Shown here piece by piece: positions 33,571 to 37,120 of a stretch of DNA of 64,000 nucleotides. The stretch lies in the NCBI GenBank assembly GCA_964270895.1, contig OZ185446.1; one strand, written 5' to 3'. Every line of letters starts with the position of its first letter. The first letter of the stretch is position 1. Position numbers and translations under genes: made by a program. Under the pieces are notes generated by a model. It was given only the letters and a program-made list of their open reading frames with translations, made no database searches and had not been told where the DNA came from. Source of the stretch: Podarcis filfolensis (Eukaryota).

Positions 33571-33685
33571 GCATTCTGGAGAAGACAACAAGATGCTTGT
33601 GTGTGATACATGTGACAAAGGGTATCATACTTTTTGTTTACAACCAGTTATGGACTCTGTACCAACAAATGGCTGGAAATGCAAA
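33571..33685 (+). CDS. KMT2C: KMT2C exon 9 (115 nt) HSGEDNKMLVCDTCDKGYHTFCLQPVMDSVPTNGWKCK (PHD)
   Basis: tttcctag|GCATT...TGCAAA|gtgagt. Confidence 0.97.
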
Positions 33686-33870
33686 GTGAGTTTACGTTTT
33701 GAAATTGGAAGTTGATTACATAAGAGGCCTGCTTTCATGTTCTTTTAGCCCACTGAACTCACTTCAGCTAATGAATAGCAACACAGAGAATCTCTGGTTA
33801 ATCTCATGTTGATTTTCAAGTGACCGTTACTTCTGCTAATCACAATCTTTTGAAAAAAGTGCAAAAAAGA

Positions 33871-33910
33871 GGTATCTGAAGAAGTGTGCATGCACACGAA
33901 AGCTCATACC
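33871..33910 (+). ncRNA. Minimal type I hammerhead ribozyme
   Basis: GGUAU-CUGAAGA-A-GUGUGCAUGCACAC-GAAA-GC-UC-AUACC: stem I GGUAU/AUACC, full core, palindromic stem II, palindromic AGCU stem III; predicted cleavage after C33905. Confidence 0.8.
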
Positions 33911-34000
33911 AGTAACTAACTTAGTTGGTCTCTAAGGTGCTACTGGAAGGATTTTTTTTATTTTGTTTTGACTACGGCAGACCAACACGGCTACCTACCT
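33873..34000 (+). mobile_element. Penelope-like element terminal-repeat fragment
   Basis: 14-bp TSD gtgcaaaaaagagg at 33859-33872 and 34001-34014; ctgaagaag...gaaagctcata...ttagttggtctctaaggtgcta...gaccaacacggctacc recalled as a reptile PLE end. Confidence 0.85.
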
Positions 34001-34509
34001 GTGCAAAAAAGAGGGATAAGTTTGCCAAATATACAACTATTATGGGGCTTTTCAGCTGAGACATATTCTTAAATTACTTCATAGTTAAGCGGAAAATCAG
34101 TGGATTAATATTGAAACAAAGGGGTTGACCAAGTATAGGGTTCAAGGTTTACCTTTTATACCAATTAAAAGTATCAAGAAGCTATAGATAATCCCTTCCT
34201 TAATTGCACACTTATAGTGTGGAGGAAATGCCAGTGTAAACGCTCTCCATGTTTCTCTCTGCTTACTCCCTTTTTAATACACCTGTGGTTTGTCAATAGG
34301 GACAAAATTCAATATTTTAACCAGTGGAAAAATTGGTATAGTATCCATATGTGATCTGTTTGCAGTAGTGACCCCCAAATCAGGTCTTCAGCTGAAAGAA
34401 GAATTGGGCATGATATCAATAAACTGGTTCTAATAACACCCAAGTTCTTTTATATAACTGAAATCAAGATATCAAGAGTTGAATTGTTCATGCTTGTGAC
34501 TGATTCCAT

Positions 34510-35400
34510 AATAAAAGCGATGGAATTTTTATTTATTTTTTACAAAATTTTGATAGTTGAGACAAATTGGATCAATCCAAAGTTTAAATGAAACACGAGC
34601 ATGATATTTTAAAGAAATAATAGAGGATTGAAATAGTAATTGGCTTGCTTGCAAAGCCATTATATTCAATCTTCGCAAAAATACAGGGAAATCCTCTGAA
34701 AGTTTTTCTCTGCTGGTATATGACTCCAACTACCCTTAGTCATATTTATGGTTCTACATCACCTGATTGATGGGATGGGAAGCATGGGGAACATATTTCC
34801 ACAATGTTGGGTGTACCAATATGTGCATGGATTTTGGAAGGTATCTTGAAAGAATGTAGTCTTACAGTAAAGTAGGAAATGTAGATGGATCCAAAGGTTT
34901 CGCTCTTCAGTGGCCAAAATGTCAAAATCGCATATAAGAAAATGTTTATTTTGTTTGTTTGTAGCATCACATTTATTAGTTAATAAGTTGTTAATAATAG
35001 TTATGTAATGCTGGAAGAATTCTAAAGATCGGTCATTAGAAGCATGGTATAACAAAGTATGAACAATTGTTATATTGGTGGAAAAAACAACTAGACAAGT
35101 TTGGGCAAAAAGAGAACAAAGGAAATTGATTAATTTTATGCAGCTTGGTCTGCTTTTCTTGATTTTATTAATAAACAGGATGAAAAGGAACCCACCAAAA
35201 ACTTATGGAGAATTGTACAATGAGACGTTTTTATAATATATTAACAGTATGGATTAAATAATATTCAATGATATAAATCATTGTCAAACCTTTCATTAAT
35301 ATATTTTGGTGGAGTATTTTATTGTTACTACTGTCTGTGACCCCCTTTGATGTATTTTAAAATATTTTTAAAGAAAGAGGTTGAAAAAATAAGTGTAGGA
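34510..35400 (+). mobile_element. Degenerate L1 ORF2 C-terminus and 3'UTR
   Basis: Translates LKVFLCWYMTPTTLSHIYGSTSPD*WDGKHG...CWKNSKD.SLEAWYNKV, matching the non-mammalian L1 ORF2 zinc-knuckle region. Confidence 0.7.
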
Positions 35401-36294
35401 ATATAAATAGATCAAAATGATCCATCCAAACTAGACTTTTGTCAATATAGGAACATATAATTACAAAATTTGAACAATGTGTATTTTCTGAGATTTAACA
35501 CCTATGGCTAGTTAAAGTAGACTGATACTTAAGGCTGTTGATTGCACTAACAGATGTAAGCTTTATTTTAAAAAATGTTTCTTGTTTTCATATAAATGCC
35601 ATTTCTCTGAGATGCATTAGTTATTTCCTTCCCAAATATTCTGTAATTTTTATCTGCCTTCTGGATGGGGAATTTATTGCACTCCAGCCAGATGCTTGTG
35701 ATGTTATATAGAATTTCTGCCTGCCAGATTCCTGGAGTCTCATAGCTTGTAATAACTAAATTCCCATTTTAAAAATAATAATTAGAAGGTAGCTATACTT
35801 AACTGTCAATAAAAATATACGGTACTTACTACATTTCCAAGCTGGTTTACCTTGAAAGGATACATTTACAATTGCATAATGCTTTTAACATAAATTTACG
35901 TCTTCATTGTGGAATCTTCTTTAACTTGTGTAAAGGAGAACCTTCTAAGGATGAAAACAGCAGGGCTTGATTCATATGCAACGTAGTACAGTGAGGAGAG
36001 GGAAGGACAAGAAGAGAAGCTGAACTTGTTCTCCCTTTGCTCTCCTAGCATAAGCATATTGTCATGTTAAGAGGCAGTAGCAACCAGGCAATTATGTCAG
36101 GGTGGATTAATTTAAATCAGGATAGCTAACCTGTGGCTCTTCAAATGTTGTTAGGCTACAGTTCTCATAACCCTGACTGTTGACCATGTTGGTTTGGGAC
36201 AGCAGAGATATGGGAGTACAGCAGTACCTCAGTTCTTTCTCAGTTGCCATGGGTAGTAGCAGTACCTGGAATATTGCCTGATTTCAGACAGGAT

Positions 36295-36386
36295 TGTCTT
36301 TCAGCTCTTCCTGGAGATACAGGGGGTTAAGCTGTTACCCTTGGCATAGAAAGGACATGCTCTGCCACTGAGCTGTGGTTCCTCCC
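36295..36386 (-). mobile_element. tRNA-derived SINE head remnant
   Basis: tcctggagatacaggg...catgctctgccactgagctgtggttcctccc; similar to 12490-12627. Confidence 0.5.
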
Positions 36387-36947
36387 ACATAAACTAAATA
36401 TATGACACAATATTCTTTCTTATCTCACATACTTAATTTACTAACTGTTTAGTACAGATTTAGAAATCATGAGATCAGTTTCTCACCCCTTTGCAATTGA
36501 CATTTACAAGGAAAAAGAAGTCCCAACGTACAACAGAGGAGCAGATATTTATTCAGACTATATTTACATTGTCAAGAGTTAGTATATAATTCAATTTTCA
36601 GGAGAAAGAAAGGATGCTTTTCATTTTATTTTCTGTCCATCAAAGGTTAATAATCCTTTTGATCGTGTCTGCATGGAGATTTAAGTTTCTACTGGCAAGA
36701 GAACTATGTCCCATTAAAGACATCCTTGTCAAAGATTTTCTTGTCTAGTGGAAGTGCAGTGTGAAAATTTACCCTTAGGCTGTGTTTTGAATAGATTATG
36801 GACTACTAGTTTTGCTCGTTAAACTTCCACATAAATAAAATTAAAGTTCCTCTTTCTGTCAATGTAGAACATGTTTGCCAGTGATTGTTTTTGATGCAAT
36901 AGCATAGTATCGTAAACAGGAAAGACTTTCTTTTCTCATATTTTCAG

Positions 36948-37120
36948 AACTGCAGGGTATGTGCAGAATGTGGCACACGGACCAGTAGTCAGTGGCATCA
37001 CAACTGTCTTATGTGTGATAGTTGTTACCGTCAGCAAGACAATTTGCCTTGTCCTTTCTGTGAAAAATCCTCCAATCCAGACTTGCAAAAAGACAAGTTG
37101 CGTTGTCATATGTGCAAAAG
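36948..37120 (+). CDS. KMT2C: KMT2C exon 10 (173 nt) NCRVCAECGTRTSSQWHHNCLMCDSCYRQQDNLPCPFCEKSSNPDLQKDKLRCHMCK
   Basis: attttcag|AACTGC...AAAAG|gtagga. Confidence 0.96.

Follow-up and report, generated by a model that had tools for sequence, protein, structure and literature searches.

An isolated minimal hammerhead ribozyme in a lizard KMT2C intron, apparently left by a Penelope-like element

An intron of the KMT2C gene carries, in the sense strand, the letters of a small self-cleaving ribozyme. It lies within the window analysed here, a stretch of 64,000 nucleotides of lizard DNA. Does this ribozyme act on the pre-mRNA of its host gene, or is it a remnant that is removed with the intron? 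The locus is very probably a short non-coding remnant of a Penelope-like element (PLE) with its own minimal type I hammerhead; an isolated copy of this kind is expected to be essentially inert.

The motif occupies positions 33871-33910 of the plus strand, as do all features described below on that strand. Its 40 bases read GGUAU/CUGAAGA/A/GUGUGCAUGCACAC/GAAA/GC/UC/AUACC. Helix I is an open helix of 5 bp with no loop 1. Its 5' strand, GGUAU (33871-33875), is identified by direct reading, a descriptor search and folding, and its 3' strand, AUACC (33906-33910), by direct reading and folding; G33871 probably belongs to the host and G33872 to the element. The first part of the catalytic core, CUGAAGA (C3-A9, 33876-33882), is found by direct reading and by the descriptor. 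Direct reading also places an extra unpaired A at 33883, between A9 and G10.1; such a base is a hallmark of the minimal hammerheads (min-HHRs) of PLEs (PMC4209133). Helix II is a perfect 14-nt palindrome, GUGUGCAUGCACAC (DNA GTGTGCATGCACAC), at 33884-33897 by direct reading and folding; it folds into a 5-bp stem with a CAUG loop, and the G10.1-C11.1 pair is G33884-C33897. The remaining core is read directly. GAAA (33898-33901) supplies G12, A13, A14 and A15.1, and its last base opens the AGCU palindrome (33901-33904) made up of A15.1, G15.2, C16.2 and U16.1, with G15.2 and C16.2 at 33902-33903 and U16.1 at 33904. C17 is at 33905, and the predicted cut lies 3' of this base (33905/33906), judged by position relative to the core. 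The core is unmutated and in sense orientation. The first-pass annotation had reported intact minimal hammerhead letters here, and on direct reading all of its sequence statements hold.

Min-HHRs were described in the pseudo-LTRs of PLEs (Cervera & De la Pena 2014, PMC4209133). Their helix II is long and their helix I has 4-5 bp; their G10.1-C11.1 pair and palindromic positions 15.2-16.2 are features that the published search did not impose, and in reptiles they occur mostly as single dispersed copies from truncated PLEs (PMC4209133). The KMT2C motif shares the type I layout, the CUGANGA and GAAA boxes (here CUGAAGA and GAAA, with U33904 and C33905), the unpaired nucleotide between A9 and G10.1 (A33883) and the G10.1-C11.1 pair. 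It also shares the short open helix I, the extended helix II, the absence of a helix III hairpin and the palindromic 15.2/16.2 positions (A-GC-U, 33901-33904) that serve dimer formation. There is no difference in kind. Helix II and its loop form a complete 14-nt palindrome here, and the helix II hairpin (5 bp plus tetraloop) is shorter than the 7-8 bp quoted for Schistosoma. These published hallmarks bear out the earlier description of a minimal type I hammerhead of the Penelope-like kind in the sense strand of a KMT2C intron.

The descriptor required the core with 0-1 bulge, the G10.1-C11.1 pair, palindromic 15.2/16.2, U16.1 and H17, with 4 bp or more in helix I and likewise in helix II. Applied to both strands of the 64-kb window, it matches a single site, 33871-33910; first-order Markov simulations of the window gave no match in any of 300 sequences. 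A loose pattern, CTGANGA...GAAA...TC, is common, with 5 occurrences observed and 3.1 expected. Rfam covariance models behave differently. The covariance-model check that the first-pass annotation had proposed came back empty: cmscan gave no hammerhead match at E<=10 on either 2,001 nt or 71 nt, and the site accordingly stays below the gathering thresholds of the Rfam hammerhead families (types I, II, III, HH9 and HH10). This can be explained by the models including helix III, which the minimal form does not have; we read the silence as a limit of the models and not as evidence against the motif. The published min-HHRs were themselves detected by RNAmotif descriptors and not by covariance models (PMC4209133).

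The host gene is identified by the exon at 33572-33685, which encodes part of a PHD finger (HSGEDNKMLVCDTCDKGYHTFCLQPVMDSVPTNGWKCK) according to its translation and a structure match. Among solved structures, the exon peptide best matches MLL3/KMT2C (2ysm, 4e-26), with KMT2D at 5e-19. The exon ends at 33685, at AAA/gtgagt, with the donor GT from 33686; the next exon downstream lies at about 36950-37100. The motif thus begins after 185 nt of intron, at the distance from a KMT2C exon that had been given before.

A 14-bp direct repeat, GTGCAAAAAAGAGG, is found at 33859-33872 and again at 34001-34014, and is read as a target-site duplication. The window contains exactly two perfect copies of it; dinucleotide shuffles contain 0.09 on average and never two. 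Since the repeats bracket positions 33873-34000, the insert is 128 bp long. A 128-bp insertion with a perfect 14-bp duplication had been proposed earlier, and this part of the description stands. The outer 1-2 bases of the left repeat may be microhomology between element and target. GT at 34001-02 seems to be borne by the element, and the true duplication may be 10-12 bp with microhomology at the joints. No tRNA-like gene was found at 33700-34200; an origin from a tRNA-derived SINE was rejected for this reason.

Two further parts can be distinguished within the insert. Positions 33911-33968 run from the ribozyme to the proximal of two 3' termini of the repeat family and contain a variable T-rich linker; they are delimited by loose contig ends and by a subfamily break at 33947. 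Positions 33969-34002 form a 34-nt AC-rich 'tail' between the two family termini, delimited by contig ends at 34002 and 34001. The 3' part of the insert is AC-rich: GACTACGGCAGACCAACACGGCTACCTACCT. As a separate observation, the sense strand of the insert contains something like a 3' splice site: ACTAAC at 33915-20 looks like a branch point, 33952-69 is T-rich, and a CAG follows at 33978-80. No good donor was seen just downstream of this stretch (33915-33980), and no RNA joint is listed there.

The family to which the insert belongs was examined in assembled contigs (Logan) from three DNA runs, of organisms B, C and D (the last being X15), and from one RNA run, of organism E (X18). Contigs were compared with positions 33700-36900 at 80% likeness or more. 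Between 7,500 and 20,600 contigs match in each DNA run. Summed depth over the two bins that cover the insert is 370,000-4,500,000, as against 13.6, 17.2 and 111 in single-copy flanks; the ratio is about 40,000-fold in three species, where summed depth is not the same as copy number. This lizard genome contains tens of thousands of family copies. A scan of metagenomes with a 19-mer running from GAAA into the downstream region returned one unrelated chance match only.

The copies share their edges. On the 5' side, loose ends accumulate before 33871-33873. In X15, 133 contigs begin at 33872, and fewer than 22 begin at neighbouring positions, 22 being the lowest count among the rows listed. Upstream of this boundary the sequence is mostly unrelated among copies (agreement 0.37-0.51). 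On the 3' side, loose ends with unrelated continuations lie behind 33968 (57-71 contigs per DNA run); more distally, 142-156 contigs end at 34002 and 46-59 at 34001. The two family 3' ends, 33968 and 34001/34002, are thus 34 nt apart. Continuations past the 3' edges mostly disagree (agreement 0.36-0.51), as expected for differing flanks. Joints between opposite strands, 33872<->33914, are seen in all four runs; they represent inverted fold-back copies of the kind that PLE insertions commonly show (PMC8557442). Some of the loose-end consensus on the upstream side, ...CTTCTGTTTCAGT, reveals that longer or fold-back forms are present too. The shared 5' boundary could in part be a boundary of subfamily conservation and not a true insertion end.

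The loose-end consensus also indicates subtypes of the family (agreement 0.55-0.76). One set diverges just after 33947, with CAATTTTTTT... in place of AGGATTTTTTTT; another diverges just after 33910, with CAGAACAAACTTAG....

The closest geometric parallel is Poseidon_Ac (PAc), a PLE of Anolis. Its unit junction reads CCU/CUGAGGA/U/helix II/GAAA/CG/UC/AGG (Frangieh et al. 2024, PMC11167929). [quoted passage not shown] In PAc, position A9 of the hammerhead is also the first base of the ATG (PMC11167929). Counting from A9 (33882) as +1, the family termini in the lizards fall at +87 and +120/121, close to the PAc values of about +85 and +119. The KMT2C motif also shares with PAc the layout of the ribozyme, the spacing of ~34 nt between two 3' ends, the AC-rich 3' region and the A/T-rich target (PMC11167929). 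Since the two 3' termini match PAc in this spacing, the insert can be taken to span the element from the ribozyme 5' edge to the distal start, with the tail at 33969-34002 included. It would then be a 3'-terminal piece of a PLE (33873-34000), as suggested by the repeats, the contig depth and the Poseidon_Ac geometry together.

In sequence, the insert is largely unrelated to PAc; by eye and by coordinates the resemblance is patchy and weak, which points to a different family. Helix I has 5 bp in the KMT2C copy and 3 bp in PAc, and positions 15.2/16.2 are GC in the former and CG in the latter. The PAc ORF begins with an ATG that overlaps A9, the bulge and G10.1, whereas the sole ATG of the KMT2C insert (33890-92) lies in loop II and opens a frame of only 9 codons; the 128-bp copy carries no PLE ORF start. 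The PAc-like geometry speaks well, if indirectly, for a PLE of Penelope/Poseidon type, though it is not proof. The target-site duplication, the mass family, the fold-back joints and the 3' termini spaced by 34 nt favour residence in such an element; an autonomous PLE that combines an RT ORF with exactly this hammerhead and tail was not retrieved, and no RT/GIY-YIG ORF is linked to the family. The parent is apparently a PLE of Penelope/Poseidon type, a clade assignment that follows from architecture and geometry and not from alignment to a named element.

The 5' edge bears on a further claim of the first-pass annotation, that the host target site completes helix I. This seems to hold for one base only. 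G33871 looks host-derived, as it occurs at about chance frequency in other family copies, and it adds a fifth pair. G33872 is borne by the element since other copies start matching at this position. The helix I of the family itself is GUAU/AUAC (4 bp); here G33871-C33910 gives the fifth pair. The 5' end of the KMT2C copy as defined by the duplication coincides with the commonest family boundary. This coincidence suggests either that reverse transcription tends to stop or switch template at the edge of the ribozyme, or that the unit is short and discrete.

The insertion is common to at least one related species that is ~3% diverged. A contig of organism D (X15; 1,008 nt) covers 33955-34956 with 33 mismatches and 4 gaps (~3.3% diverged) and extends 46 element letters to one side of the 3' junction; because it crosses this junction, organism D has the insertion. 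The orthologous contigs of organisms B and C begin at 33974/33975 and contain 26-27 element letters, which is below the 31-letter rule and is consistent with presence. No empty-site joint is found among the listed joints; the 5' junction is uncovered in all runs, with depth 0 at 33700-33806 in X3 and X7.

Two observations concern other parts of the same intron. At 36274-36282, contigs of relatives have extra letters, ~66 in B and C and 81 replacing 5 in D; this is an indel between the genome of the window and its relatives. At 36054-36481, summed depth exceeds that of the flanks 10- to 30-fold in every run, the RNA run included; other repeat families lie within this region.

Two classes of related ribozyme invite comparison. 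Amniote genomes have intronic hammerheads in RECK, CTCL and DTNB (De la Pena & Garcia-Robles 2010, summarised in PMC6155905). Like these, the KMT2C copy is of type I and has sense orientation within the intron of a protein-coding gene, and the amniote examples are also thought to be derived from retroelements. The amniote hammerheads are canonical, with loop-loop tertiary contacts, and their position in the intron is conserved among birds, mammals or reptiles. In contrast, the KMT2C copy lacks both loop 1 and helix III; it is a member of a mass repeat family and, as far as seen, is shared with close relatives only. With helix I open and helix III unclosable, it has neither the canonical fold nor the loop 1-loop 2 contact and monomer activity of a domesticated hammerhead. 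Animal non-LTR retrozymes (Cervera & De la Pena 2020, PMC7229834; Li et al. 2026 preprint, 10.64898/2026.07.22.740005) resemble the insert in being short non-coding PLE-related units with a type I hammerhead. In vertebrates they need dimers, and dispersed monomers are frequent, introns included (PMC7229834; 10.64898/2026.07.22.740005). Retrozymes form tandem arrays of at least two head-to-tail units that give rise to circular RNAs of 170-400 nt, whereas the KMT2C copy is one 128-bp unit that stands alone, flanked by a target-site duplication; blastn and nhmmer searches of the window with the unit return only the unit itself.

The predicted folds are unfavourable to cleavage by a single copy. 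Alone, the 40-mer forms helices I and II at -10.1 kcal/mol, with an unremarkable z score of -1.75. Helix III is impossible in a single copy because the A15.1-U16.1 pair would close a loop of 2 nt. In the native context (340 nt), helix II has a pair probability of ~0.9 and helix I of 4-5%. In a fold of 156 nt, the 5' strand of helix I, GGUAU (33871-33875), pairs with the repeated UACCU at 33990-34000 and not with AUACC. This long-range GGUAU/UACCU stem might be an alternative conformation of the element RNA, like one discussed for Poseidon_Ac.

The catalytic double hammerhead, joined by intermolecular helices I and a 4-bp AGCU helix III, is predicted at -17.7 kcal/mol, as against -20.2 for two monomers (+2.5, unfavourable). 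The AGCU/AGCU duplex alone contributes -2.5 kcal/mol. The best predicted dimer (-37.2 kcal/mol) swaps the palindromic helix II; helix III is still absent, and this dimer is non-catalytic. No second copy was found in the 64 kb (33 kb upstream and 30 kb downstream) by searching for three parts of the element, both exactly and with 3 mismatches, by sensitive blastn or by nhmmer.

Cleavage of a single Schistosoma min-HHR is undetectable in vitro, and dimers cleave weakly, mostly at non-physiological Mg2+ (PMC4209133). The Anolis PLE hammerhead shows no cleavage without the protein of the element, RNA binding by the PAc protein requires the first 172 nt of the ORF, and no reads in Anolis RNA-seq begin or end at the hammerhead cut site (PMC11167929). 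The KMT2C copy stops at about +120, short of these 172 nt.

In the RNA run (X18), contigs on parts of the intron have a depth of 2-3 and are about 3-5% diverged; family contigs from other loci have a depth of 7-54. For these assembled contigs, no position is listed at which many molecules start or stop. One RNA contig ends at 33904. Since DNA contigs end at 33900 and 33905 too, the ends at 33900-33905 are explained as assembly breaks near the palindrome and not as RNA ends. Among intronic ribozymes, only fast-cleaving ones are known to disturb co-transcriptional splicing. The first-pass annotation had raised a possible effect on KMT2C splicing, circRNA formation and transcript dose. Such an effect of the KMT2C copy is not supported, and several arguments speak against it: helix III cannot form in a single copy, the window offers no partner, the dimer is unfavourable, helix I is rarely formed, published monomers are inactive, family depth is ~40,000-fold and the insertion is shared with a relative.

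Other readings of the locus differ widely in probability. A chance resemblance, with no descent from a ribozyme, would fit the lack of a match to the Rfam hammerhead models and the frequency of the loose CTGANGA...GAAA...TC pattern (5 vs 3.1 expected). It is almost certainly wrong: none of the 300 simulated windows matches the full descriptor, the motif sits at a fixed place in a very-high-copy repeat family with PLE-type termini, and the bulge, G10.1-C11.1 and palindromic 15.2/16.2 are all reproduced though a chance match would not need them. The 128-bp unit might also be a full-length, discrete, non-autonomous element headed by the hammerhead and mobilised in trans by a PLE reverse transcriptase, as a monomeric relative of retrozymes. 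Many copies do share the 33872 boundary, with mostly unrelated sequence upstream (agreement 0.37-0.51), and share their 3' ends; the duplication places the 5' end of the KMT2C copy at that same boundary, the reptile retrozyme consensus averages 176 bp, and dispersed monomers are common. This is possible but rather unlikely, as retrozymes are defined by tandem units and a single unit is present here, a run of eight Ts inside the unit argues against Pol III transcription, and the boundary may just as well reflect a place at the folded ribozyme where reverse transcription tends to stop, or a limit of similarity between subfamilies.

The ribozyme could instead be conditionally active in KMT2C pre-mRNA, cleaved with the help of a cognate PLE protein or a family transcript, for example in the germline, so that KMT2C output is lowered or splicing altered. 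The intact core and sense orientation are compatible with this, the Anolis PLE hammerhead is protein-assisted (PMC11167929), and family RNA is more abundant than the intron in X18 (depth 7-54 vs 2-3). Even so, such activity is very unlikely. The copy ends at about +120, whereas the PAc protein needs the first 172 nt of the ORF; no Anolis RNA-seq read starts or ends at the cut site (PMC11167929). The trans double hammerhead is unfavourable by +2.5 kcal/mol and the non-catalytic dimer is far more stable, while helix I is found in 4-5% of the ensemble. In addition, KMT2C is dosage-sensitive, at least one species ~3% diverged retains the insertion in it, and sister copies number tens of thousands. 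Less probable still is a general coupling of transposon activity to cleavage of host pre-mRNA, KMT2C here, in which RT-EN protein or abundant family transcripts would activate intact sense intronic copies.

For the preferred reading, a PLE remnant, the motif, the duplication, the abundance and common termini of the family and the insertion in a relative are observations, and we infer the following order of events. Insertion would have occurred by target-primed reverse transcription at an A-rich site of the KMT2C intron, before this lizard and its close relatives diverged. Synthesis would have started at the distal internal start site of the element (about 34000-34002) and stopped at the hammerhead 5' edge (33872/33873), and the outcome would be a 128-bp copy between duplications of up to 14 bp. 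In the parent element, the ribozyme would need tandem or dimeric RNA or the RT-EN protein to work, if it works at all. We infer that the isolated copy is inactive in vivo; in KMT2C pre-mRNA it would have neither helix III nor loop-loop contacts, and would be essentially inert and removed with the intron.

The KMT2C copy is an ordinary repeat relic with a standard, weakly active PLE ribozyme. This ribozyme class was described in 2014 and litters reptile, amphibian and fish genomes, to which the KMT2C copy adds one more example. The contig pile-ups from three related lizards reproduce, in a different family, the two reverse-transcription starts and the 34-nt tail of Poseidon; they also suggest a preferred 5' end at the ribozyme edge. 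Should sense intronic copies be cleaved in some circumstances, the consequences would extend to thousands of host genes; this is a question for the family as a whole and not for this locus.
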